Source: Macrostomum lignano (lineage: Eukaryota). From it: a stretch of 64,000 nucleotides of DNA. The position numbers and the translations under genes were made by a program. Positions within the stretch are counted from its first letter, which is position 1. Every line of letters begins with the position of its first letter. Location of the stretch: NCBI GenBank assembly GCA_002269645.1, contig NIVC01001148.1:1-64000 (forward strand), read 5' to 3'. The notes under the pieces are model-generated. The model did not search any database. It saw only the letters and a list, made by a program, of their open reading frames with translations, and had not been told where the DNA came from. Of this stretch, positions 2,666-62,293 are shown piece after piece.

Positions 2666-2773
2666 CCCACCGGACTCTACGTCTGGTCTACGACTTTGTC
2701 GTAGCTCCTACTTGGCGCCGCGTTTTCGTCGCGGAGGGGAAACACGCCCAATAGGGGTGTACGAAGAGCGCCA
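2666..2773 (+). ncRNA. Putative HDV/CPEB3-like self-cleaving ribozyme at the LINE 5' end
   Basis: Hand-folded: P2 TGGCGC 2713-18/GCGCCA 2768-73; P3 GCG 2720-22/CGC 2730-32; L3 TTTTCGT; P1 3' strand GGAGGGG 2733-39; P1.1 AA 2740-41 with L3 TT; P4 ACAC-G-CCC/GGG-GTGT 2742-60; J4/2 A-CGAA with candidate catalytic C2762. Starts at the TSD boundary. Confidence 0.72.
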
Positions 2774-2815
2774 TAACTCGGACACCGTGTCCAGCGAGCG
2801 TCATTGTACTGGAAG

Positions 2816-5800
2816 ATGAGCGCGTATCGGTTTTAACACCGGAGGAGCCAAGTATCCGGCCGCTACCTCCCCGCTCTTCTGTTGCTCAGGGCCGGCGATG
2901 TTGAGACCAACCCGGGGCCTCCTGCTGCCCGTCAGCTGCGGCCGCCCTCTGCGCGGCAAGTTCCTCACCTGCGCGAGATGTAACAGCCGCTTCCATCTGC
3001 AGAGGGAATGCTCCGGGTTGAGTCGTTGGGCCGCGAACAAGGCCGCGGACGCCCAGGAATGGCACTACGCCAATTGCGAGAACGGCCCCACCACCCAGAC
3101 AGACTCGTCGTCCTCTGACCAACCGTCCACCCCTATCTGCCAGCCCACGGAGGAGCAAACCGCTCGCAGGCAAGCCCTGCTCAACTGTATCCGGCAGGAG
3201 AAACCTAAATGCAACCATTGTCGGAAAACGATGCGCGTCAGCTCCACCATCGCCTGCTGCAATGCCTGTGAAGGATTCTTCCATAACGCCTGCACGCAAG
3301 CCACGCGCGACCAGATCAAAAAAGAAATCGGTCGTGGGCTTTGGAGATGCGGTCGCTGCACCGAAGCCGCCTGCCTCCAAGGCCCGCCCTCCCCTGAGGA
3401 CCCTGACCCCACTCCTGTTGGAGGGAGCCACCCGGAAGCTGGGTGGGACTGCAAGAAACCTGAGCTCAAAATTATTCAATGGAATGCGGATGGGATCAGC
3501 AACAAAATGGGGGAGCTTGAGGACCTCGCATCCCGGCTTCAGGCCGACGTTATTGCGGTTCAGGAGTCGAAGCTCACCTCCTTCAACAAAACCCCCCGCA
3601 TCCCGGGCTTCAGCACCATCCGCAAGGACCATAAAACTGCCCGCTGCGACCCGAACGTTAAAGGCGGCGGCCTGCTCTTCTTTTCCGGCAAGGCATTCCG
3701 TTCAATAAACTTCAAGGATGGTCTGGCGGAACCACCGAAGGCTGCAGAATTTCGATCAGCACCTCGGCCAGAAAAAAACTTGTCGTCTCCAACATCTACC
3801 GCCCCCCCATCCGGCGCGTGGAAGGCGAAGATCACCGTGAGCACCCCAGTGTCGATTCCTGGCTCAGATGCTTCCACAGGGAAATTCTGCTTGGTGACCT
3901 CAACCTCCACCACACTGCCTGGGGCAGCGATCCCAATCAAGGACCTGAAGGTGCAGCAAAGCTCAGTGCCTGTTCGACTGGTGCAACTCCGTGGACTACC
4001 GCATCCTGAACTCAGGGGAACACACCTGCGTTGACAGGCGCACCGGACGGACTAGTGCTCCCGATCTCACCATCGCTAGTCAATCAGTGGCCGACCTCTG
4101 TAAATGGCAACCGCTCACCGAGTTTGGCTCCGATCACCAACCCATCCTGGTGACAGTCCGGGAATCCCGGGAAACCCTGAGCACTGCGCCTCGCTTCAGC
4201 TGGTCTCGGAAAAAAGCGGACTGGACCGCTTACCAGACCCTGCTCTCCGAGGACGCCGACCACCTCAATGGCGGCTCCATCAAGAAACAGATTGCCAGGC
4301 TCAGCTCGGGCATGCTTAAAGCAGCCAAAGCTGCTATCCCGCTCAAAAAGTTTCTGCCAAAAACAAGCCATACTGGGATGAAGAATTTACTGAACTTCGC
4401 GACACTCGGAACCGGCTTAGGGAATCTGGCGCCCATCCTGGCGAGTGGCTCGAAAAAAGTCACGAACTGTCCAAACTCTGTGCCGAAAAGAAAGCCGAAT
4501 TCTGGAAGGAGTACATCAACAAAATGTCCGACTCTGCCGACCCAAAACAAGTCTGGAGGACTGTCAAGTGCCTCAGCAACGGCAAACAACAAGATCCTCC
4601 CAACGAATCTCTCGTTGTTGATGGTCGAGACCTGCGCACGGACAAGGAAAAGGCTAACGCCTTTGGCCGCTATTACGAAAACATCAGCACTCTGAAACAC
4701 TCGGCGGTGGACCGCAAGGTCAAAGTGGCCACGTCCCGTCGCCTGGCTCATTACTCCACAGACGACGACCTTTACTGCCGTGACTTCACCCCTAAAGAGC
4801 TGAGACGGGCCATTGGCAAACTTGACCCCAGCAAAAATGTGGTCCCGCCGAAATCGAAGCTGCCTTCTTCATCTACCTGCCGGACTCTTGGATGACGGCC
4901 TGGCTGGCCGTCTTCAACCGTTGCTGGCACACCGGACACTGTCCTGGAGTCAGGCCGTCCGAGTCTGGAAAAAGGCCGTTATCGTCCCCCTGCTAAAGGA
5001 CGGAAAGGACCCCAAAGACCGCGGTAGCTACAGGCCTGTCAGCCTCACCTCCATCTGCGGGAAGATCCTCGAACGGCTAGCTTATCCTTGATCGCCTCTA
5101 TCGCTGGCTCGAGCGCCACAACATCATTCAGGCCTGGCAAGCCGGTTTTCGTAGTCGTGGCTGTGAAGAGCAAATCGCACGCCTCGTTCAGTCAATTCAA
5201 GATGGATGGGAGAAACGCCCGCACTTGAAAACTGTGGCCATCCTCATTGACTGCTCTCGCGCCTTCGACCGTGTTTGGCGCGCTTGCCTTATTGGTCGCA
5301 TGATGGACGAAGGCGTCCCTGCCTGTATGGTGCGCTGGTTCACCAGCTTCCTCGAAGGCAGGCAGATCGCTGTGCGGGTCGGCTCCTCGCTTGGGAAATG
5401 GCGCAGACTGAGGGAAGGCGTCCCCCAGGGCGCCGTCAGCTCGCCTGCCCTCTTCCTCATCTATGTTAACAAGTGGTCCGGTCACAACGTGCCTCTCGTC
5501 GACTACAGTGGCTATGCAGATGATCTCGCCCTCTGGAGCACGGGCCGGAACCTCCCGGAAATCCAGGCTCGCCTCCAATCCGCCCTGCAGCTCGTCGAGG
5601 AATGGGCCGCTCATCTACGCATCGACATCAACCTTTCTAAAACTGAGGGATGCCTCTTCTCTCGGGACAGATCCGACCGTCAACGCAACCTCAGCCTCAC
5701 CCTCCGGGGCCAACAGATTCCTTTCAAGCAGGAGATTAAGTTTCTCGGAATCTGGATTGACCAAGGTCTGCTATTCGAAAAGCAAACTGACTCCGTCCGG

Positions 5801-7130
5801 GAGAAAATGCTTCGCCGAGCTGCCATCCTTCGTGCCCTAGCCCACCGTGAATGGGGCTGGGATCGCAAGCTGCTGCTGCGAGTCTACTGGGCTCTTGTCG
5901 AATCCGTCGTGTGGCATGCCGCCGCGGCCTGGACGCCCTGGCTATCTGCGACCCGTCTCAACGCCATCGACCGTGCCTAGCGTGAGGCCCTCCGGGTTGT
6001 CACTGATCTCCCCCGCTCGACACCGGTAGAGGCCATCTACTTTGAGTCGGGAATCCTTCCTATCAGCCTCGAAGCGCGCCGAAGATCGCTGCTTGCGGTT
6101 GAGAAGGCGCTCCGCAGACCTCCCGGCGACCCCTTCCGGCAGCTTTGCGAACGCCGCCAGGACACCCGGCTTTCTGCCAACCGAGGCCTCCGCGAAAAAG
6201 CTAGACGCATCACCGATGAGCTCCTTGGTGGACACCGTCTAGCCAACAGCCACATCCGGCTCCCACCCTGGAATTCGTTGGCCGACGCCGGAGTGCGCAT
6301 GTTCAACAAGCTGCTGTTCGAGCCCATTGAAACCGACGCCGCCCAGGCGGGTCCAAGCCACCGCGACCGCACGCTGCCCGAACGCCGCCACTTACTTCAC
6401 CGACGGATCCGTCTCTGGTGGCGTTGAAAACGGAGGTGCAGCCTGGATTCTCCTGAGCCAGGACGGCTCCATCAGCCGGCGCGGGCGCGTGGCCGCGGGC
6501 CGCTGGTGCAGCCCTCGGCCTTCCTTTGAGGCCGAACTTATCGCCATCTTCCAGGCTCTAAGCGATATCATTGCCAATGCCCCGAAAGAGGCTGCAATTC
6601 TCACCGACAGCCAGAGCGCTATCGCGGTCCTGCAAGCTGATCGCCCAACCATCAACCCGCTCGTCGAGAACGTTAAGGAACGCCTTATCATCGCCGCCCG
6701 TCTTTCTAAGATCATCCTGCAGTGGGTGCCCGGGTACGCCGGAATCCCCGGAAATGAACTGGTGGATGCCGAGGCCAAACTAGCGGCCACGCTGCCTCAG
6801 GAGCATGTCGGCACCACCCTGGATTCGGCTAGGGCCCGCATCCGACGGGTTGTTAACTATTCGCCCAACATGACAGGCCACCTGCTCGAGGTCTATGGCC
6901 AAAAGATTACGACGCATGAGGGCCCTCGCAGGCAACACAGGTCCTAGTCTCGCAGGTCCGCGCCGGCCACTGTCCTGCATCGATCTACTACCGCGACCGC
7001 ACCGGCATTGATGTCGGGGCCGGCAACTGCCGTCTCTGCGCGGAAGAGGTAGATCAATTCAAACTTTTCAACTGCCCGGCCCTGGACGTCCAACGCCGTA
7101 CTCACGGCATTACCGAAATGTGTCAACTCG
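2816..7130 (+). pseudogene. Disrupted single polyprotein ORF of the Ingi-like LINE: 2A - PHD - PHD - APE - RT - RNase H - zinc knuckle
   Basis: Consecutive ORF fragments 2898-4034, 3991-4695, 4524-4895, 4813-5091, 5225-5980, 6327-6947 join into one domain order through frameshifts and stops. PHD-like motifs: CGRP..CARC..FH..C..WHYANC and CNHC..CCNAC..FHNAC..WRCGRC. Confidence 0.88.
2837..2920 (+). other. 2A (StopGo/ribosome-skipping) peptide HRRSQVSGRYLPALLLLRAGDVETNPG|P
   Basis: Exact D(V/I)ExNPGP consensus: GAT GTT GAG ACC AAC CCG GGG CCT at 2897-2920, preceded by a hydrophobic LLLL run. In frame with ATG 2816, with a TAA at 2834 in this copy. Not visible in the supplied ORF track because the frame shifts just downstream. 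Confidence 0.85.
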
Positions 7131-7362
7131 TTCGCGCCGACGTGGTGGCGCTTCTCCTAGGGGCCATCGGTTGGTGTCCCCTTTAGGAGAGGCTCACAGC
7201 ATACAACAACAATAACGTCACCAGTAATGCAAAAACCAACTATATTGAGATCATTGTCTAGCAATTTGACGATCATTATTCAAATTTTTAATGTAGAACA
7301 ATCCATTACTACAAGCAATACATTGTCTGCAGGATCGTCAAATAGAAAAACAATGCAAAGAA

Positions 7363-12188: not shown

Positions 12189-15100
12189 CTATTGCCACAG
12201 CGCAGTGTTTCGTTTGAATGTTACAAGCCTTTGGTCTGCACAAAAGAATAAGACACCAAGCAAGATGTGACATTCGCGTGATTCAAGAGTGGCATTAGAG
12301 ATTGGTAGGAAACCAGACTATATGACTACACATTCCTGTCTTCAAAAAACTGGGATACTTTCAAAGTTTAAAATCATCTAAGATAGCAGGAGCTAAAGTT
12401 TTAATTGACAATTTAGTTTAATATCAAACTCGGAATATCAATTTTTTCCAACATCAGCTTCCAATGTGGAGACCTTCTCCGCAATACTTGCAGAACCTGA
12501 GGTGATGTCACAGGCATTGTTCAGCGACTGGCATTTAGCTGCTGACTGCTCGACCAATTCAGAAAGCTCTGTCAGACTGTAGTAAGGAAAGTGGGTCCTG
12601 CCCCAGCCAGCGGGCTTGCGGGCTATGGCAAGGCCACGGGTTGTAGAAGCGCCACTAATAATTGCCTCATCAATGAGCTTCACCCGTCTCTCGTATGAAC
12701 GGCAGAGGCGAGGCGCCCAATCGCTGGTAAGGGCGCACCGATACCCAGATCCGGCGGAGCTGGCATCGGACTCTTTCGGGTATCCAAATGGCATGCTGTG
12801 AAATTAAGAAAATACAGCCAACATTAGGAAAAATTATGTAAACAGAAATCTTTTCGTCAGGAACTATACAGCTTTAATTTACGAATTGGTGCTTTGGCTG
12901 CTGCAAGCATCTTTGGCTTGCTGCAAAAACTATACCAGATACCAATGGTGAAAAGTGCAAGCACTCGCCACAGGATGCAGTAATAACACGAAGTACAATA
13001 TAAAAAGCTGCGGACCGCTTTTATCGTCTAGCAAATACTTATATATTTACAAAAAAGATTTTGCGAGCAAAGATTCTCTTGTTTATGTAAAAAATATCGC
13101 ACTAATGCCTATTCATTGTTTATTATCGCAAGCTTCAACAATAGAAAATAGTTGGAACCCCTGCTTTTAATTAATCGATGGCGACTAAATTTCAGCGTTT
13201 CAGCATTTATATTGATGAAAGCCTTTTCTCTCTTACCAGCAATTTATTGCTGCAAATCTAGCCTAATCAATAGTGTGAGCACCCTGTTAATAAAAAAGGA
13301 CAGGAAAATTTTATTCGTAGTTTTTTATTACAAAAGAATGCTATTATCTGTTATGCCGAATCATAGTAACTGAGATGTAAATTTATCAGTTATACTAGCG
13401 TACTAGCATTACAAATTTTGATACAGTATCAAGAAGGCTTATTGTGAGCAAATAGAAAAAATATCCGTTTAAACATTGCTATATACTGACCTTGTGAAGA
13501 AAAAAGACTCGTTGCCAAGTGCAATAGGATTAGGAGAATAAACCGGATCGTCTGGAAATACAGTCGGCAACGGAGAGACATTAAAACGCGGTCCGATGAC
13601 GTCAGCAGTGTCGGCACTCAGCAGGTAGACACCCCGGCCCCGTCGCCGACAGCGATGCACCGTGAGCTAGCACTAATATCTATATCAGTAGCACCAACTC
13701 CCAGTTGGTAGACAGGCGATGATGGCATAGACTGACCCAGTTGAAGGAACTGGAATTCGCCAAGCGAATTGCCAACTAACAGTCGGTCATGCATTGCCGG
13801 TAGGAAGCGGACAAAGTGTGGATCCAGTTGGACGCAGAACGGCTGAACTGGGCGCAAAACTCGCAGATCAAAGGCCTAAAGCAAAAAGTAATCAACTAGC
13901 CTTAAAAATGACAAGGATATGTGAACACTTGTATCGGCTCTTATTTTAGGACTACAGTGCACTTTACCTGCAGAAGGCGATCAGGTATAACATTTCCATC
14001 ATGCCGTACTGACCAGCCGCAAGTGACCAGCAGGCTATCCTGCACTGCTACATCAGCAAGCTGCCCGGTAACTGTGCTGAGGCTGTGCTCTTTTCGTCCC
14101 GTTCCTCTATCCAGTAGAGTAACTGTGCCCTTGGCACTCGCAGCGCAGATAAATCGACCATTGTGCCTTAGAAATTCGCAACCATCTGGTCCCATGTCGA
14201 CACACTTAACCAAGCGGCCAGTGCCAGTATCCAACTGCAACACACGATCCTGCCGGCCACCTAAGGTCAGCCGCCCGGCCTCTGGGTCGTGAATCATGGC
14301 TGCTAAATCAACGGTCATTCCAGGACATGAATATGACCAACGACGCTGTCCAAACTTTGAGTAACAGGCGACTCCTGATCTGCAGAATGTCAATATATAT
14401 AGAATATTCGATAGAATTCCCAAGCTCTCTGCCCTCTGAATTTTTCTAGTCAGGAATTTCATTCGTCATACTCTACCCTTAGCGTGTTTTCCACTGCTCC
14501 CACTCACTACACCGATACAAAGTACAAAAACTGCAATAGTAGCTTATGACTTCTTGTCTACCGTGAGTTATCCGTTAGTCCTAACAGTGACTTAATATAC
14601 GAGTAATTCTTATAACTGCAAGTCGTTTATCTTAGGGTTTTATGAGACGCAAAGAATGTACTATGCAACAAAAAATTGCCTGAGCTCGTTAAGCTTGAGC
14701 ACGAACGTATCAGTAGTCGCTAGTGTATAATAAGCAAAAACATATTCTAACTAATAATTAAAGATGCTTAGTGACCATACCATAGTGACAACTTAATGAC
14801 ATCTGGTTATATGAAAAACGGCACTTCAAGTTAAGTTTAATATTTTTGACATTACTTAAGATAGTTACCAACTATTTGGTAGCTGATTTGCTCCTTAAGT
14901 TTCTTAAATCAAGCACGTTTTAAACTAGACGTGCAAACTTACTAACTACATTATACCGCAATTTATCAGATGACATATACTTCAAAAGAGTTCTCACTTT
15001 GCCATTGTGAAGACGCCAGCCTCAGCAAGAGGACTAGCAGCACACACCTGTCGCAAATCTTTCTGGACGTGAAGCGACACATACTTGCTGAGCTGCGGTC

Positions 15101-32685: not shown

Positions 32686-33527
32686 ATGACTGAAAATGAA
32701 GGCAGTGCAGAGAGCCCTACAGTGGCGGTGACTCAGCCCCAAGCTAGTTTTGTAAACATGTTTTTGCGGCCGCCTCAATACCAGCATGGACAAGACTTTG
32801 AACTTTGCTGGCACGATTCAACAATTTCGCATCATCTCTTCCTGTGGATCAGCGCAAGAATGCTCTGCTGTCATTCCTCGACAACAAATCATATCAAGCG
32901 GCCAGCAATTTGGATGCTGCCCTGTCCTACGACGACTTTGAGAAGGCTCTGAAAAATCGATTTCGGCCATCAACATCCTCTGCTGAGCTGCAGGCGCAGT
33001 TCTTCAATCTGACTCAAAAGGACGGTCAGTCGGTTGCAGACTATTCCGATGCCCTGATCGTTGCGGCAAAGCGTGCGTTCCCGAGTCTGATGGAGACGAA
33101 AGCAGGTGCCGAGCAGGAGACGTCGGTGACAGCGAAGGACGAGCTTCTCAAAGGTCGGTTTCTATCCGGATTGAGGGACCCAGCTGTGCGAATGCAGACG
33201 CAGATGCAGCCAAAGGCGACATTCGCTGATACAGTTGAAACAGCGCGATTCGTGGAATCGATACAGTCGCAAGGAGGCACTGCTACGGCTCTAGCTGCTG
33301 AGGTTCCCGAAGCCTTTGCAGTCGGAATTCAACGGTCCCTGAAGGAGCTGTACAACAAGCTCAGCCGCTGGGAGTCAAAGGACCAGGATCATCGTCAGAG
33401 CGGCGACAGACGCAGAGTTGTGACATGCTGGAAGTGCGGTAAGCCGGGCCATGTTCAAAGATTTTGCACTCAGAAGTCGGGAAACTTCGATGGAGCGGCG
33501 ACCGCCGGGGTGCCGTTCCGCAAGTGA
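32686..33527 (+). CDS. Gypsy gag (one apparent frameshift near 32800) with CCHC knuckle
   Basis: MTENEG..FLRPPQYQHGQDFELCW / LARFNNFA..ALKNRF..FLSGLRD..CWKCGKPGHVQRFC. Confidence 0.88.
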
Positions 33528-33537
33528 GAATCCCGGC
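33479..33537 (+). promoter_or_regulatory. Programmed -1 ribosomal frameshift signal: G_GGA_AAC slippery site plus H-type pseudoknot
   Basis: GGGAAAC at 33479-85 is in the gag frame and pol is in the -1 frame. 6-nt spacer; S1 GGAGCGGC 33492-99/GCCGTTCC 33512-19; S2 GCCGGG 33504-09/CCCGGC 33532-37. Confidence 0.8.
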
Positions 33538-36500
33538 GCAACCAGTCGTAGAGGTGTCCTGCTCAGCCACTGGTGCCAACATGCTGGTAAACTGTCGCAT
33601 CCTGCCAATGTGTGTCCCTGCCAGCTGTCTAGTTGACACTGGGTGTTCCCAGTCTTTGATGTCAAGTTCCCTGTTTCGCAAGCTGAATGAGAGGCTCCTG
33701 CCTTTGACGACTCCGGTGCAGTTGAAGCTGGCAGACGGTAACTATTTGGCTGCCTGTGGTTGGCAGGAAGTGCAGCTAAGTTTCGGTGTGGCAACGGTTC
33801 GACAAAGAGTTTTAGTTGTCGACAATCTGGCCAAGGATTTTTTTGCTGGGTGCAGATTTCCTGGCAAACTGTGGCTGCGTCATCGACTGCAATCGCCAAA
33901 CGCTCACTGTGTGCGGTCAGCAAGTAAAAATGGAGTCATCGGCAGCCAGCACCTGTGTATTCGCCGTTGAGGTAGCAGACAGGACAACCGTGCCCGCTGG
34001 TCACGAAATCGTCTTCCCAGCGAGATTGGCAAGTGAGTCAGATGCAGCTGTTGATGGTGAGTGCGGCATTTTTGAGCCTGACAATTCGAAGGACATCTCC
34101 ACGGTCATGTGTGGAGCGCGCAGCCTCGGTGTTGCGAGGAGGACTCATCGCTGTTCACTATGTCAATACGGACACCAAGCCGCATACATTTTACCCCGGA
34201 ACAAGACTGGGGACTTTTGAGCCGATGTCAGATGGTGCCGATGCAGAGTTGTCAATGCAAGTTGAGACAGTGAAAGGTCAAATCGCCGAGTATGTACCAA
34301 ATGTGCACATTGATGAGAAAAATCTTACAGCCAATCAAGTTCAGTGTGTCAAAGATCTTCTGCATCAGTACCAGGATGTGTTCTCGAAAAGTCCAAACGA
34401 CCTGGGCTGCACTTCACTCCTTGACCACAAAATTGACACCGGGTCGGCGAAACCTATCAGAGTGCCTCCTCGCTCCTCGTAGATTGTCGCCGCCGAACCA
34501 GCGAGCTGTGTCAGAGATGGTCGAGCAGATGGTGAGAGACGACATCGTAGAGCCTTCTATTCTCCGTGGTCGAGCCCGGTCATTCTGGTGAAGAAGAAGG
34601 ACGGCAGTTTGCGCTGTGAACGACTTCAGACTGCTCAACTCCGTGACCGTCAAAGACAGTCATCCACTGCCTCACACCAGCGATCTGATCGATGCTCTCG
34701 CAGGATCCACAATGTTCTCAACGCTCGACTTCACTAGCGGGTACACCCAGGTGATGCTGGACTCAGAGAGTCGCGCAAAAACAGCATTTCCTGCGCCACA
34801 AGGATTATTCCAGTACAAGAGACTACCGCAAGGTGTGTGCAATGGTCCTGCCACGTTTTCAAGGCTGATGGAACTCGTTCTGAAGGGCCTCCGATGGGAA
34901 GTGTGCCTGTCATTTCTTGACGACGTTGTCATCTTTTCGAAAGGATTCGAGGAGCATCTGCGGCGTCTTGAGCTTGTGTTGCAGAAATTAAGAACCGCTA
35001 ACCTGAAGTTGAAGCCGACCAAGTGCCACTTGTGCTATCAGGAGATCTCATTTCTTGGCTTTCGAATCTCAAAAGATGGCGTGACCACTGACCCGGACAA
35101 GGTGAAAGCAGTGCAGGAGTGGCCAACGCCCGAAGATCGTTCAGAAGTGCGACAATTCCTGGGGTTATGTGGCTACTATCGTCATTTCGTTAAAAACTAC
35201 AGTGAGATTGCTGAACCGCTGTACAAGCTAACGCAAAAGGACGTGACCTTCAGCTGGACTCTCGAATGCTCAGCAGCATTTAATCGCCTAAAGCAGTGCC
35301 TTACTTCCAGCCCAGTCCTCATCATGCCGACATTCGCAGAAGACGCTGAGTTCGTGCTAGATACCGATGCCTCTGGCGTGGCCATCTCCGGAGTTCTTCA
35401 AGAGCGCCGTGGTGGCAGGACGCAGGTGGTGGCGTACGGCAGTCGCATTCTGTCCAAAGCAGAGAGAAATTACTGCACAACGAGGCGTGAGCTGCTGGCA
35501 ATTGTGCACTTCGTCGGTCACTATCGCAGCTACTTGTTAGGAAAAAGATTCACACTACGTACTGATCACGCCTCGCTGATCCATCTTCTGCGCTTTCGAG
35601 ATCCCGATGGTCAGCTGGCACGGTGGCTGGATAAGCTAAGCGAATTCGACTACCAGACTGAGTATCGCAAGGGCGAGAAACATGGAAATGCAGACGCACT
35701 TAGTCGGCGACCGTGTCGAAAAGGACCTTGCCTGTGCAGTGGCTCTGCGCTCGCTGTCGAGTTCAATGACGACAGCGCGATTCGACGAGCACAGGCAGAG
35801 GATCGGTGCATGCAGAAGCTGGCGAACTGCTTGCGAGATGGGCAACCACCGGATAAGGCAGAGACGGACGGCTGGAGCAATCGGCAGCGGCAACTGCTGT
35901 CCGAGTTTAAGCGGCTGACACTGGTGAACGGACTGCTGTGCCGCCGATGGGAATCCGAAGATGGCAGCGCCTTTTGTCAGCAGCTGCTGGTGCCAGAGAG
36001 TCTACAGCGCGATGTTTTTGTCGAAGCTCATGCTGGAACGAGCGGCAGCCACTGCGGACCGCAGAAGACCATTGAAAAGATCAGGGCGCGACTCTACTGG
36101 CCTGGAATGACAGCAGATGTGACTGACTGGTGTGCTGCGTGCCTCGAATGCGCGACACTGAAAGATTCTGGCCAGCACAGGCGGGCACCTCTACAGAGCA
36201 TGGCGGTCGGCAGCGTTGGCCAGCGACTGGAAATGGACTTCATGGTGGGCCTGCCGAGGACCGATCGTGGAAATTCAGTCATCCTGGTAGTCATCGACAC
36301 CTTCAGCAAGTGGACTGAGGCCTTTCCACTGCCGTCTCAAGACGCTGAGACCACAGCCCGGACGTTTGTCAACGAGTGGGTGGCTCGCTTTGGAGTCCCA
36401 GGGTCGGAACTGGGAGTCACAGCTGTTTCAAGAGACGATGCGGCTGCTGAAAATCGACAAGACTCGGACGGCAGGCTACCACCCTGAAGGAGACGGCGGT

Positions 36501-37373
36501 TGCGAACGGATGAACCGGACACTGGTGCAGCTGCTGCGAGCATGGGTGAACGAGAATCAGCGAGACTGGGATCTTCATCTGCAGATTGCACTGATTGGCT
36601 ACGGCACTTCAGTCCACAAGTCGACTGGTCAGACACCTTCGGCGATGCATTTCGGCCGGGAACTGCGACTACCACTGGACTTGGCATACGGAGGTCTGGC
36701 GCCGGATAGGCAACGTCCTTGTGAATGGGTGGCCGAGCTGCGGAGCCGGCTGCAGACATCGCACGATTGGGCGCGACAAAACTTGGAGGCAGCGCAACTG
36801 CACCAGAAGGCAGCGTACGACAGGAGGTGCCACGGCGAGGCATTCAGCGAGAACGATCTGGTCTGGCTGCACAATCCGGCGCTGAAGCGAGGCGAGAGCC
36901 GAAAATTTCATCGATGGTGGACTGGGCCATGGCGCGTTAAAAAGCAGATCTCAGACGTCACCTACCGCATTCAGCACGAGGCCAATGCACGACGGCGAAG
37001 GGTGGTGCATTTCAATCGCCTGAAGCCATGCAACACGGCCAGTCCAGCTGCAGCACCTCAATTGCAACCAGCGGCGCAACTGCACAATCCTGACGAGGAC
37101 GACCTGAGATTTGACGGCGTCCCAGCCGGCGCCCCAGCCGGCGCCCCAGCCGGCGCCCCAGTCGGCGCCCGCGGCGCCCCAGCCGGCGACCCAGCCGGCG
37201 ACCCAGCCGGCGCCCCAGCCGGCGCCCCAGCCGGCGCTCCGGTCGGCGCCCCAATCGGCGCCCCGGTCGGCGCCCCTGCTGATGTTCCAGAGCATCCAGA
37301 ACAGCCTGTATTGCGCCGAAGTGAGAGGGCCCGTGCCCCGCCAGAATTTTTTGGTGAAGTGTATACTCATTGA
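33486..37373 (+). pseudogene. Gypsy pol (protease, RT, RNase H, integrase) with several small indels
   Basis: LVDTG; TLDFTSGYTQV..LPQGVCNGPATF..FLDDV; VLDTDAS..RRELLAIV..TDHASL; H..H..C..C zinc finger; LEMDF..IDTFSKW; WTGPW (GPY/F-like); no chromodomain seen. Confidence 0.93.
37122..37280 (+). repeat. 12-bp GC-rich coding minisatellite (GCCGGCGCCCCA)n = (AGAP)n in the integrase tail
   Basis: About 12 units translated as PAGAPAGAPAGAPVGA... Confidence 0.9.
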
Positions 37374-40077: not shown

Positions 40078-40586
40078 TATATAAAGTTTGATGTGCAAAT
40101 AATTTTACAATACACTAAACATTATTCCAAAAAAATAATTGAAATTAAAATTGAATGCAGATCAAAGTTAGTTGTAGTTTATCCTGCTCAATGGTAGATA
40201 GGTATTTGTAAATAGTAGGCCCTAGTATTATATTTGTTATAGTACATAATTACAGCATATATTATTGTATGAATGATATTAATAAATACCATTTATCAAG
40301 ATATACAAGTAATTGATATTGTCAATAGCATAGCCATAGGGGGCTTGGGAAGTCTTAAACCTCCTCCTGAAATCATGCTGAAAATGTTTACTAAGTATTT
40401 AATCTTTGGCTTGAATTTTAAGCCAAAGTAATGGAGATTTCAAATTTTACCTTTTTTCTGAAGCATTACATTACTTTATCTAGATCTGCATGATAATAAG
40501 AATCCAAACCATACCAAGTCACTCTTTTGCCCATAAACAAAGCAAACATTGACTTTCATTTTTTCCATTCATGCAGCTTTTTAGTC

Positions 40587-41498
40587 ATGTCGCTTGCATT
40601 TTCACCACCCTCTGCACGGAAGGCTGCGCCGCCCAACACAGCTACAATTCAGCGACTGTTAGATGAAAATGCCCAACTAATTAATGCCATGCTGGAGTAT
40701 GAGCAGCGTGGTCGGACTCACGAGATGGCTACTCTACAGCAGACACTTCACAGAAACCTTGTATACCTAGCTACCATTGCTGATTCACACAGTAATAGTG
40801 CATCTCAACAAACAGCTCAAACACCTATGCAGCCACCAATGCAAGGCCCTGGCGCTGTGTTACGTGCTCCAGGGCCAACACCTCAGCCAATGATCATGCA
40901 GCCACAGCAACAATCACAGCCGGCTATGATGATTCAGCAGCAACCACAGGCAGCCATAATGCAGCAACAGCCGCAGCAAGCTGTCGCTATGCAGCAGGCT
41001 ATGGTGCAACAACCACAAGCTATGATGCAGAGACCACAGCAGCCTATGTTGCAACAGCAGCCACCGCCGCCTCGTGCTGCCCAAAATTCTGTTGGTCATG
41101 TCACTGGATCATCAACTGCTGCAGCAGCTGCTGCTGCCGCGGCCGCTGCTGCAGCTGCTAGACAACAGCAGCAGCCTGCAAATTCTGCGTATTTTCAACA
41201 GCAACCAGCGCAAATTATGAGGCCCCCATATGCACCGACTGTTTTCACACCGCAGCAGCAGCCGCCACAGTCATCTATCGCTTATCAAATGCTGCCACCG
41301 AATGCTTCGTCGTCGCAGGTGCAGCCACAACTGCAGCCACCGGTTCCTCCATCGCAGCAACAGCCAACCGCCGCAGCGCCTGTGACCTCGGCTTCTGAGG
41401 CAAGTGCGCAGTCAGCAGCACCGTCGGATGCGTCAGTGACTCCAATTTCCCAGCAGCAAGGGTCCCAGCACGCGAATAAATCAGCTGCCTCGCATTGA
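40587..41498 (+). CDS. SS18: SS18/SSXT (SNH)-domain BAF subunit with Q/P/A-rich low-complexity tail, single coding exon, 303 aa
   Basis: MSLAF..NTATIQRLLDENAQLINAMLEY..LQQTLHRNLVYLATIADS matches the SS18 family N-terminus; the ATG at 40587 is preceded by TTTTAG. Confidence 0.9.
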   Translation: MSLAFSPPSARKAAPPNTATIQRLLDENAQLINAMLEYEQRGRTHEMATLQQTLHRNLVYLATIADSHSNSASQQTAQTPMQPPMQGPGAVLRAPGPTPQPMIMQPQQQSQPAMMIQQQPQAAIMQQQPQQAVAMQQAMVQQPQAMMQRPQQPMLQQQPPPPRAAQNSVGHVTGSSTAAAAAAAAAAAAAARQQQQPANSAYFQQQPAQIMRPPYAPTVFTPQQQPPQSSIAYQMLPPNASSSQVQPQLQPPVPPSQQQPTAAAPVTSASEASAQSAAPSDASVTPISQQQGSQHANKSAASH

Positions 41499-59300: not shown

Positions 59301-62293
59301 AGATGCTTCAGTGAGTGGTTTCATAGGATGCACCGGTGCGTACTCTTTTTCTTAAAGAGTACTTTTAAGAAAACCTGACTGCCAGTTTCTCTAACTTTTT
59401 CAGTCTTTGCACATCCGGGAACTTATTGAACCCCCTCGAACTTCAGCTAGACTTCTGCACTCGTGAACCAACTTACAACAAACGCTACGAATATTACTCG
59501 TACATATATATTTATTAATTTATTAATTCGTTGTCAGGAGACACGATAATCAATATCCTAAATAACTACCAAAATGAGTGACCGTTTCAGTAGGTCGAAT
59601 TTTTACTAGCTCCAAAAATTCATAAATTCGAAATTTCACATCCTCTAAAACTTTGATACTTCCGCTAGCCAACAACTTGAACGATTTCGTCGATGTAATT
59701 TAATATTTCGTGCTTATAAAGTTTACTGTCTTCGATAGTGAGTTTTCAAGTCTGTGAAAGAAATCGTGTTTAAGGTTAAATATCACACAGAATGTTACAC
59801 ATTCATTTTCGTATCTGTATTGGAAGCTGGTATTTACTTATAAATATGGTCAAAATAGCCCATCGGTTGTGTCTACTGTCTGTATATTGCTGCTTTGCAT
59901 CATAGTGACTCGCGGCAAAGGGCAGTCTGCTTAATTGCAGTGAATTAGCGCGCTTTACAAGAGTCACCGTATTTGGACTAGAGACTCCGCTTTCGCATGA
60001 TTTCATCTGATAGCAGTAATTCTCTACAGAAAAAGTGTTTTCAAGTGGAAATCAAGAACGTAATGCCTAAGTCCTTTCATATCGTCTAAGTTTAGTGCAA
60101 GATCAATTCTATACGTTATTACGAGTCTCACAGATCCTAAAACTTTTACTTCTACTCGTAAAGCGCCATAAAACAGGAATGCAATTTCTATTTCACCTAC
60201 CCCGTTTTCCCACCAAGTGTTTGGAGTTTTTTAATTTGCAGACTTTCCAAAAATTTCAGCTTTAATTTATTATACTACTTGCTGACGATCAGTAGAATAA
60301 TACGACTTACAAGTTTGGCCAATGCGTTTTTTTATTTTTATTTTTATGTAATATGCATATAACGCTATTGGTTTGTACCGCTCTAGATCTTTAGTCTTTA
60401 CTAAACTTTGTAAAAAATATCAATGGTTTATGCAATGCAACCTTTCAGGTTCATATTTGCTTTTCTGAACCACCTGTCCCAATTCGCGGATGAAAACTTG
60501 ATGGATTCCTACAACCTGTCGATTTGTCTAGCGCCTTCCTTCCTTCCCGTGCCGCCTAACCGCGACCCAGTGATCTACCAAGGTTCTATCACTCACCTGA
60601 TGAAGCTAATTATTGAGCACGAGTCCGACATCTTTGTGCGCAAAGACGTGCCCGGGCCCATCTACCGTAAAAGAATGGAAGACGACTTCGATGTGGAAGA
60701 CGAAGAAGAGCAGTCCGTTTGCTCCGAGATGGGTGAGTCAAGGGGTTCTCTAGTATGTGCAGGAAGGCGCTAGGCTTTTACCCCAACACCTGAAATCTCT
60801 TCTGCGTTTGCGGAATGGAACTGGAAATCTAGAATCCGAGTTCAGCTCACGTCCTAACATGGGAAACATCTTGCGCGCGATTTCGCTACAGAATTCTAGG
60901 AAAAGAAAAACGCGAATACAAAACTTTAGTCTCTCAAATCCTATTTTATGCAATCGTCTTTTCAATATTCATTTTTACTCATTTTCCTTACAATGCAAGT
61001 CCACCGTATCATTCTGTTACTTGCAATCAGTTGAATCTGTTTGCATAATATCAGGAAAGGCAGCATATTTCACCCTTTCGATATCTAATAACAAGCGCTT
61101 GGTTTGTGTTTCCAGAGCCTGAGAGCGGCTACATGGTAGCGGCCAAGTACTCATTTGAAGCGCGAACATCACGCGAACTCAGTTTCAACAAAGGGGACGT
61201 CCTCACTGTAGTCAGCCGCCTTACCGCCGAGTGGCTGCGTGTTGTCAATGCCTCTGGTAAAGAGGGCCTAATTCCCGATGCATATGTGGCCAGGCTGCGA
61301 CACTCGTCTACAGAATCTGAAGCGCTTGCAGCAAACACTCAGCAGCCGCAACTACAGCAGCCACAGCAACCTGAGCAGCAGCATCCTCAAAGTCAGCTGC
61401 ACTCGCAACATCAGCATCAGACACCTCAGTGCCCTTCAGCTGCACCGAAAGCTACCCACCCGTCACAGATCGTCCCATCAAACGTTGAGAACTCAAAAAC
61501 GCCGAGCGCAGCGACGGTTGGTTCCACTGAGCAAGCACCCAAGGACGTATCCCAGATTTCTTCAGACACAATACTACAAACTGCTCAAACTGCACCAAAA
61601 AGTGTGCCACAGACCGCGACTGTGTCCATGCCGCAAGCAGAGCCGACGTCACAGACTTTTGCAAAATCGATTTCATCTTTGACTGACGCAACTGGCAACA
61701 TCAGTCCAACTAACCATCAGTCAGCAAGTTCCTCATCAACAACTGTAACCTCTAAAGCACCACCTGCTCAACAGAAAGCAACACCCGCAGTGGAGACAGC
61801 AGTATCTACGGCTTCAACGTCTTCAATATCACCATCGTCGCCATCTTCAACTGTTGCATCGGCATCAGCGGCTTCATCGGATCAGGATATGCAGAGCATC
61901 GATCAGGCTTTGCAAGAAGTAATCGCTGGCCTTGAGCTCCTTACATACGACACGGAGTCTCCTTATGCCGATCCACAAGCACTGCTTACAGCCAAAGTGC
62001 AACTTCCAGCGGCCAAGCGGGCTCCAGATCTGGTCTCCGATCTGCCCGAATCAGCTGCCGACCGCTTTGCCCTTGAGGGCCACGCTGACACGCTGCGTGT
62101 GCGGCGTTGGCCGGAGCCACCTCAGTCAACATTGGTGACAGCGGGGTCATCACCACCAGTGGTAGCAGAATCCGGCGCTGCCTCTTCGGCAGTAGTTGCG
62201 CCAGCTGAGTTGCCGGGCTCTGCGCCCTTGTCAGCCAGCGGGACCCCTGTAAAGCCGCCTAAAGTTGCACCTAAGCCGAAGTTTTGCAAGTAG
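45532..62293 (+). CDS. SRGAP: srGAP-family (SLIT-ROBO RhoGAP) F-BAR/RhoGAP/SH3 protein; coding exons 45532(or 45562)-45616, 54405-54979, 56050-56333, 56540-56835, 57164-57548, 57662-57931, 60449-60732, 61116-62293
   Basis: MKKDALFDLESKIK|ELRVQLAEQQ (F-BAR start), RRRAEIEEQYSKDL, KALRERNEYLLQL, RPRLFGGS, GVFR|VPGS (arginine finger), LKCYLRDL, NLMDSYNLSICLAP, SH3 AKYSFEARTSRELSFNKGD..EW..GLIPDAYV. All GT-AG junctions were checked and are phase-consistent. Confidence 0.93.
45975..50438. mobile_element. Foldback element with about 600-bp arms made of about 215-bp tandem subrepeats, interrupted by HINE copy 2
   Basis: ATGTATTGGTTTCC..CAGACAAACATTCAGAAA at 45975 and its reverse complement ending at 50438; repeated CTTCACAAGCTGAGATATTCCCTAGCAATGGTTGTTA on the left, inverted on the right. 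Confidence 0.72.
46663..49281 (+). mobile_element. CT-rich HINE-like element, copy 2
   Basis: Colinear with 16644-19095 at both the 5' about 300 bp and the 3' about 1.2 kb; CT core differs in length. Confidence 0.75.
50516..50878. mobile_element. Palindromic element carrying a short Merlin/ISXO2(IS1595)-like transposase scrap
   Basis: About 85-bp inverted arms (CAATATTATTCTCAAGTTTGAA..); the centre translates MELGGARQTVEVDKSKF, resembling the GG..VEIDESKF motif. Confidence 0.45.
53961..54035 (+). repeat. 21-bp tandem repeat (TCAAGTCATTATTTTCAAAAA-like, about 4 units)
   Basis: Directly visible. Confidence 0.7.
58204..59438 (+). mobile_element. Full-length mariner (DD34D) element in srGAP intron, transposase disrupted
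   Basis: TIR (TA)CGAGGG..TTCAATAAGTTTCCGGGTGCACAAA / TTTGCACATCCGGGAACTTATTGAACCCCCTCG; motifs WVPPHL, IVSGDEP, HHNTQPH (HDNARPH-like), HQPYS..VPCDFFMFPQIK. Confidence 0.9.

Follow-up and report, generated by a model that had tools for sequence, protein, structure and literature searches.

The LINE that begins at position 2666 of the window, by which we mean the whole 64,000-nt stretch of DNA analysed here, opens with what is very probably the core of an HDV-like ribozyme, and the 5' strand of its helix P1 exists in two parts, CCC and CTCC, which flank two abutting hairpins and with them can form a perfect four-way junction. This split-P1 arrangement is far from chance. Judging from the structural model, we lean modestly towards the view that the RNA of the parent element cleaved itself at 2665/2666 through the split P1, as read from a single decayed copy. 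The wider proposal that a natural HDV-like ribozyme works with a P1 interrupted by a perfect four-way junction, with the two hairpins as a built-in clamp, seems to us about evenly balanced.

The boundaries of the element are given by a target-site duplication, ACGTCACCAGTA. The bases flanking its two copies differ on either side, and the duplication is not extendable; the element therefore spans 2666-7214 and its first base is C2666. The features that define the element are as follows.

2654-2665, no strand: 5' copy of the target-site duplication, ACGTCACCAGTA, with the identical 12-mer at 7215-7226
7215-7226, no strand: 3' copy of the target-site duplication, ACGTCACCAGTA, perfect over 12 bp
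2666-7214, + strand: full-length, decayed non-LTR retrotransposon with 2A, PHD, APE, RT, RNase H and the tail ACAACAACAATA, from Pfam, three-frame translation and tblastn against the proteins of a relative, L001
2894-2920, + strand: 2A-type peptide GDVETNPGP at the N-terminus of the LINE ORF, from three-frame translation

The PHD, APE, RT and RNase H domains were found in this order by Pfam. APE-type LINEs whose single ORF carries a 2A peptide at its N-terminus, in some cases with a PHD domain behind it, have been described (PMC3708506). The order seen here, a single ORF with an N-terminal 2A and then APE, RT and RNase H, is of the Ingi/L1Tc type and suggests a placement in the Ingi clade. The 2A peptide is out of frame with the PHD region downstream, and the comparison with the L001 proteins revealed seven frameshifts as well as in-frame stops. 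With seven frameshifts the copy is a dead relic. Sequencing error was considered as the source of the frameshifts and ruled out, as the junctions are not located at homopolymers.

Protein searches combined with a metagenome scan recovered about 40 distant relatives with protein identities of 27-62%, and those that bear a ribozyme are about 30-56% identical to the LINE in the window. Most relatives carry 2A. Their common plan consists of 2A, PHD, APE, RT, RNase H and a (CAA)n-type tail, with the ribozyme placed upstream of 2A. Canonical HDV-like folds were parsed at this place in L001, L013, L015, L023, L024/L039, L009/10/12/14 and L011/L032, of which the following details are used below.

L001: CCAATTC-TAC-CCCCACC-C-GCG-TCTTCGG-CGC-GAATTGG-...-ACAAAGA-GGTGGGG
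L013: CCTCGTC-AAC-GGCGG-AA-CCC-TCTACGAT-GGG-GACGGGG-...-ACGAAGA-CCGCC
L023: J1/2 of 16 nt
L024/L039: canonical fold with a long P4 (59-nt interior)
L015 and L009/10/12/14: folds without P4
L011/L032: P1 CAGGATC

The relatives were compared by single-sequence covariance models and hand parsing, because MAFFT alignments of the ribozymes were structurally wrong, and the ribozymes of the L020a/L027 and L006 families were left out for want of a confident parse. In every parsed relative P1 is contiguous and 6-7 bp long, followed by a J1/2 of 2-16 nt, and where the context is visible P1 opens 0-3 nt past the preceding (CAA)n tail. The sequences of P1, P2, P3 and P1.1 vary between the relatives while the pairing is kept; a compensatory change from A-T to G-C distinguishes P2 of L014 from that of L010. 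Six of the relatives (L009, L010, L012, L014, L015 and L032) carry minimal, P4-less HDV-like ribozymes with 6-19 nt from P1' to J4/2. Extra sequence was also observed, apparently inside L3, in the form of about 33 nt in one relative, a TTTCGAAA mini-palindrome in another, and a GATCGG-CCCGA-CCGATC hairpin in a third; these apparent insertions are located at L020 5286-5356, L020 about 255-290 and L006 about 3630-3680, in folds that could not be confidently parsed.

The same layout can be traced at the 5' end of the LINE in the window, where the elements downstream of the split P1 strand are the following.

2709-2712, + strand: J1/2, TACT, with length class and sequence as in the relatives (TAC in L001, AAC in L013, CTA in L015)
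2713-2718, + strand: 5' strand of P2, TGGCGC, pairing with 2768-2773 over 6 bp
2720-2732, + strand: P3 GCG/CGC with L3 TTTTCGT, to be compared with GCG-TCTTCGG-CGC in L001
2733-2739, + strand: 3' strand of P1, GGAGGGG, directly after P3, read from the sequence
2740-2741, + strand: J1/4, AA, forming P1.1 with T2725 and T2724 of L3 (A2740-T2725 and A2741-T2724)
2742-2760, + strand: P4 hairpin, either ACAC[G]CCC-AAUA-GGGGUGU or 6 bp at 2744-2749/2755-2760, from folding and the model match
2761-2767, + strand: J4/2, ACGAAGA, with the putative catalytic C2762; identical to L013, ACAAAGA in L001 and ACGAAGAA in L015
2768-2773, + strand: 3' strand of P2, GCGCCA, pairing with TGGCGC at 2713-2718 and crossing P1

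By sequence, the segment thus contains P2, a 3-bp P3 with a 7-nt L3, P1.1, and C2762 in J4/2 after P4. A covariance model built from the L001 core alone (R1, L001 224-286) had its best match across the window at 2712-2774, with 22.9 bits and an E-value of about 6e-4, and this was the only non-self match at E<1 in a search of the window and 42 loci; with the other relatives R1 gave no detectable match, even with filters off. A descriptor derived from the relatives matched the + strand of the window once, at this ribozyme, against an average of 0.25 matches in shuffled windows. The same descriptor had a second match on the - strand near 15014, which has no LINE context and looks like chance. Because of the R1 match, the descriptor match and the canonical folds at the same place in the relatives, we consider the core very probably to be a genuine member of the ribozyme lineage of the relatives. 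The first-pass annotation of this DNA had recognised the HDV-like fold with P2, P3/L3, P1.1, P4 and J4/2, which the sequence, the R1 match and the ribozymes of the relatives all bear out. It had also suggested that a T was lost from P2 at 2718/19, which is unnecessary since homology gives J4/2 as ACGAAGA and leaves C2719 as an unpaired junction base, as in the relatives.

That there is no ribozyme at all, and that the resemblance arose by chance in a GC-rich 5' UTR, seems highly improbable. In its favour, loose descriptors yield many chance matches, and the Rfam HDV-type models had zero matches in the window at the gathering score or at E-values up to 10. However, the same Rfam models produced zero HDV-type matches in nine of the relatives, canonical folds included, so that their silence on the window is uninformative. 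Chance resemblance also does not account for the match of R1 to the core, for the canonical ribozymes at the same place in the relatives, for a J4/2 that is common to them, or for the covariation in P1.1. The first pair of P1.1 (nucleotide 3 of L3 with nucleotide 1 of J1/4) is T-A in the window, L001 and L013, A-T in L023 and C-G in L024/L039, and the second pair is A-U in the window and G-C in L013 but unpaired in L001. L3 starts with T[CT] in 5/5 of the relatives that set the descriptor (L001, L013, L023, L024 and L039). The A-U pairing in P1.1 that had been pointed out earlier is therefore present, and its first pair covaries, but it is not special, as the first A-U pair is also found in L001 and L013.

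The P1 3' strand GGAGGGG is where the ribozyme departs from its relatives. The earlier annotation had stated that this strand lacks a contiguous partner, and a scan of 447 nt upstream, with G.U pairs allowed, indeed revealed no contiguous 7-mer and no 6-mer able to pair with GAGGGG; the lone 6-mer partner found pairs with GGAGGG and is located outside the element. A 7-bp partner exists solely as CCC plus CTCC, with 36 nt between them, arranged as follows.

2666-2668, + strand: 5' strand of P1a, CCC, the first three bases of the element, pairing with G2737-G2739, from the cofold minimum-energy structure and the shuffle test
2669-2687, + strand: hairpin A, ACCGGAC/GTCTGGT, 7 bp (2669-2675/2681-2687) with the loop TCTAC, in minimum-energy and centroid folds
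2688-2704, + strand: hairpin B, CTACGAC/GTCGTAG, 7 bp (2688-2694/2698-2704) with the loop TTT, in minimum-energy and centroid folds
2705-2708, + strand: 5' strand of P1b, CTCC, pairing with G2733-G2736, as aligned by covariance model R2

Jointly, CCC and CTCC are the full Watson-Crick complement of GGAGGGG at 2733-2739, and there are zero unpaired bases at all four helix junctions between P1a, hairpin A, hairpin B and P1b. Hairpin A contains one G.U pair (2672/2684), and its sequence is unique within the window. Every base pair of this arrangement that was described in the first reading of the sequence is present. According to the cleavage-site rule for HDV-like ribozymes, the first base pairs with the last base of P1' (PMC3774820). 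C2666 does so, which places the predicted cleavage at 2665/2666 and thus at the edge of the duplication, a coincidence that had been noted before and that holds now that the 12-bp duplication sets C2666 as the first base.

When 2666-2708 and GGAGGGG were folded as two strands, the four-way junction was the minimum-energy structure at -24.5 kcal/mol. The value without the CCC/GGG pairs was -22.2 kcal/mol, so in the nearest-neighbour model the 3-bp P1a adds about 2 kcal/mol. Hairpins A and B recur in every fold of the region, and the TAG just before CTCC is part of hairpin B and does not pair with GGG. A covariance model of L001 with P1 paired (R2) aligned CTCC and TAC in the window to the 3' half of the L001 P1 strand and its J1/2, and deleted the remaining P1 strand rather than opening a 36-nt insert. 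This alignment supports the homology of CTCC-TAC, and is neutral on whether P1 is split.

These results also bear on a P1 that is contiguous but imperfect, in which CCCACC at 2666-2671 would pair with GG-A-GGG at 2733-2738 across an A.A mismatch, and hairpin B with a shortened hairpin A would form a structured J1/2, a P1.2-like domain as in the Agam-2 ribozymes. The cleavage site would remain at 2665/2666, and large structured J1/2 domains are known that activate HDV-like ribozymes (PMC4908430), with J1/2 loops in R2 reaching hundreds of nucleotides (PMC3774820). We nevertheless regard this structure as quite unlikely, since its cofold energy of -18.3 kcal/mol is 6 kcal/mol worse than that of the split model, it breaks three pairs of hairpin A, it leaves unused the CTCC that aligns with the P1 strand of L001, and it needs an internal mismatch in P1, a type of change reported to impair the activity of HDV-like ribozymes (PMC3774820).

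The chance of obtaining the split P1 was estimated in three ways. Not one of 2,000,000 shuffles of 2666-2712 contained a split P1 with at least 14 flush hairpin pairs when the 5' end was kept at the edge of the duplication. Among random 36-mers of the same composition, flush hairpins with at least 14 pairs were formed by 26 of 3,000,000 (about 9e-6). A loose version of the split P1, at any position, with stems of at least 5 and G.U pairs allowed, was found in 13% of the shuffles; it is thus the fixed 5' end, together with the quality of the hairpins, that makes the result significant.

An insertion after arrival would give the same bases a different history. The ribozyme would have had a normal contiguous P1, CCCCTCC, when the element arrived, and 36 bp would have been inserted afterwards between P1 bases 3 and 4; a palindromic insert would have produced the four-way junction by accident, without its ever being used, and insert-free copies would begin CCCCTCCTACT. 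Such an insertion accounts for CCC plus CTCC and for the coincidence with the duplication edge without a new structure, and it agrees with a copy that is old enough for seven frameshifting indels, with the contiguous P1 in all parsed relatives, and with the extra sequence that L020b, L020a and L006 appear to hold inside L3. However, random DNA would give exactly two flush 7-bp hairpins with a probability of only about 9e-6, the insert sequence is found nowhere else in the window, and 39 nt show no significant similarity to the flanks or the ends of the element, so that neither a templated filler nor a duplication is an evident source. A large insertion would also have just a small chance of landing at one of the six internal positions of P1 within 4.5 kb, by estimate rather than computation. 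We consider the later insertion unlikely, and judge it several-fold less likely than parental self-cleavage with a split P1.

A second copy of the family was sought in several ways. Comparison of the 64,000-nt window with itself gave the self match only, and the best match in the protein searches was 44% identical in the N-terminal part and 62% in RT, while a look-up of the exact protein returned no record. The metagenome protein-pattern scan yielded 36 loci, all distant; two matches turned up when genome contigs were scanned with 20-mers, both bacterial and due to chance, and there was no copy in the viral contigs. One decayed copy, the contiguous P1 of all parsed relatives and the shortness of P1a, at 3 bp, are among the points that weigh against the split-P1 reading. 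The four-way junction inside P1 that was proposed earlier stands as the minimum of the cofold, as an arrangement far from chance and as a structure with its 5' end at the cleavage site, but it is seen in a single decayed copy, and the parsed relatives have a contiguous P1.

In the split-P1 reading, the 5' strand of P1 would be interrupted after its third base by 36 nt made up of two abutting 7-bp hairpins, and P1a (CCC/GGG), hairpin A, hairpin B and P1b (CTCC/GGAG) would meet in a perfect four-way junction. P1a would stack on P1b to give a continuous 7-bp P1 atop P1.1 and P4, and hairpin A would stack on hairpin B alongside. As the parent copy was transcribed by read-through, hairpins A and B would fold first and juxtapose CCC and CTCC, so that the clamp presents half-strands of 3 and 4 nt, with both of which P1' could then pair. 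C2762 would catalyse the cleavage 5' of C2666, and the released 5'-OH RNA, starting with CCC, would have been reverse transcribed into the present site. The duplication edge would on this proposal coincide with the predicted cleavage site because it was the released 5'-OH RNA that was reverse transcribed here.

Transcription starting at an internal promoter, as for Pr77 of L1Tc, could also have fixed the 5' end at C2666, with the insert as a feature of the family and the ribozyme inactive; the hairpins would then serve as a promoter, in RNP binding or in protection of the 5' end. The hairpins are thermodynamically autonomous, and in L1Tc the same 77 nt are both promoter and ribozyme (PMC3383444). 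This alternative leaves unexplained the flush fit of the hairpins with CCC and CTCC and the match of the first three bases to the GGG of P1', which is otherwise unpaired; for an intact hairpin block with position and flanks randomised, we put such a fit at roughly 1e-4 to 2e-3 (an estimate, not computed). It appears improbable to us, more so than a later insertion.

HDV-like ribozymes at the 5' ends of LINEs are established for R2, RTE and L1Tc (PMC3774820, PMC3185411, PMC4035085), and the combination of a 2A peptide with a 5' HDV-like ribozyme is known from L1Tc/ingi (PMC3185411, PMC4035085). The ribozymes of R2, RTE (drz-Agam-2) and L1Tc/ingi (L1TcRz) share with the window the nested double pseudoknot of P1, P1.1, P2, P3/L3, P4 and the J4/2 cytosine, and those of R2, RTE and L1Tc also share the position at the first nucleotides of the element and the presumed release from a read-through transcript. 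L1Tc further resembles the LINE in the window in having a 5' ribozyme, an N-terminal 2A and a single ORF with APE, RT and RNase H (PMC3185411, PMC4035085, PMC3708506). However, P1 is contiguous in R2, RTE and L1Tc, whereas 36 nt lie between P1 bases 3 and 4 in the window. Closest to the window among the relatives is the resemblance to L001 in P3/L3 (GCG-TCTTCGG-CGC), J1/2 (TAC) and J4/2 (ACAAAGA), and the J4/2 of L013 (ACGAAGA) is identical.

The known variation among HDV-like ribozymes includes a missing P4, a J1/2 of a few to hundreds of nucleotides, and the structured J1/2 domain P1.2, which activates catalysis by bringing P1 and P2 together (PMC4908430). Agam-2-1 and R2 ribozymes with a long J1/2 resemble the window in having an autonomous helical domain between the cleavage site and P2 (PMC4908430). 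By analogy with Agam-2-1, the 5' helical domain in the window could pre-organise P1 relative to P2. In Agam-2-1 and R2, however, the domain follows a complete P1 of 6-7 bp, whereas in the window it lies inside the P1 strand and J1/2 is just TACT. Mismatches in P1 reportedly impair HDV-like ribozymes (PMC3774820), and full-text searches of the literature brought up no HDV-like ribozyme whose P1 is interrupted or contains a junction. Because the P1 of known HDV-like ribozymes is contiguous and 6-7 bp long and the literature searched contains no interrupted P1, the split P1, if functional, adds a new structural variant to an already known class of ribozymes, in a biological role that is likewise known.

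P1 is regarded as the part of the fold that is least tolerant of irregularity, and to our knowledge nearly all HDV-like ribozymes were discovered with structure descriptors in which a contiguous P1 is required. The CPEB3 ribozyme, which is mammalian and intronic, has a contiguous P1 that begins with a G.U pair; its P3-L3-P3 segment GCG-UUCACGU-CGC and its J4/2 CGAA presumably resemble the GCG-UUUUCGU-CGC and CGAA of the window. The Rfam CPEB3 model had zero matches in the window at E-values up to 10. If the split P1 is true, and a natural ribozyme is active with a four-way junction in this helix, the HDV fold would have to be defined more broadly. Its architecture would be one that all current descriptors and covariance searches rule out by their very design, with a class of members missed; LINE 5' ends could harbour many such variants that have gone uncounted. 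It would also be a natural peripheral domain that organises the substrate strand itself. If instead the later insertion is true, the window would simply contain another dead copy of a LINE whose ribozyme has mutated. Regardless of the split, there is a group of marine LINEs with 2A, PHD, APE, RT and RNase H whose 5' HDV-like ribozymes are undetected by the Rfam models.

Several further observations were made in the 5' regions of these elements. A conserved box, G(G)GTTTTT(G/A)G...GGG, is present about 60-75 nt upstream of NPGP in most relatives and is seen at 2826-2840 of the window and in L020, L024, L027, L030, L032, L035, L015, L011, L009 and others. In the frame of 2A the box reads (G/V)FL.G.G, and the copy in the window reads CGGTTTTAACACCGG, with a stop codon; the box may encode a conserved leader peptide, or may function as an RNA element or in the start of translation. 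J1/2 and the 5' strand of P2 (TACTTGGCGCC, 2709-2719) are complementary at 10/11 positions to GGAGCCAAGTA (2844-2854), about 125 nt downstream, an alternative pairing that could operate after cleavage or in attenuation, as one in L1Tc has been proposed to do, or that could be due to chance.

Some relatives lie head to tail, directly behind the (CAA)n tails of copies that precede them (L020 1-100 and 5200-5290, L024 about 720-790, L031 about 60-85 and L032 about 185-200), pointing to tandem arrays or to insertion that targets the elements' own tails. In L001, TTCTACCCCCACC at 218-230, which covers the 3' half of P1, J1/2 and the 5' strand of P2, recurs with one mismatch at about 4705-4717, just past the (CAA)n tail; the recurrence may stem from 5' joining assisted by homology, or from a neighbouring copy that is truncated.

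The target site of the LINE in the window sits in a 32-bp tandem repeat, seen at 2607-2665 as ACT[A/G]TGTCAGTC..GACGTCACCAGT. Just upstream of this repeat there is a second one, TACGAAAAGCCGGTA, with a 26-bp spacing, the core of which is complementary at 10/12 positions to the P2/P3/L3 segment of the ribozyme. Elsewhere in the window, other ORFs on the + strand belong to a Ty3/gypsy-type LTR retrotransposon with gag, RT, RNase H and integrase (32805-37373), to a long ORF with an SSXT domain (40527-41498), and to an ORF with an SH3 domain (61106-62293).
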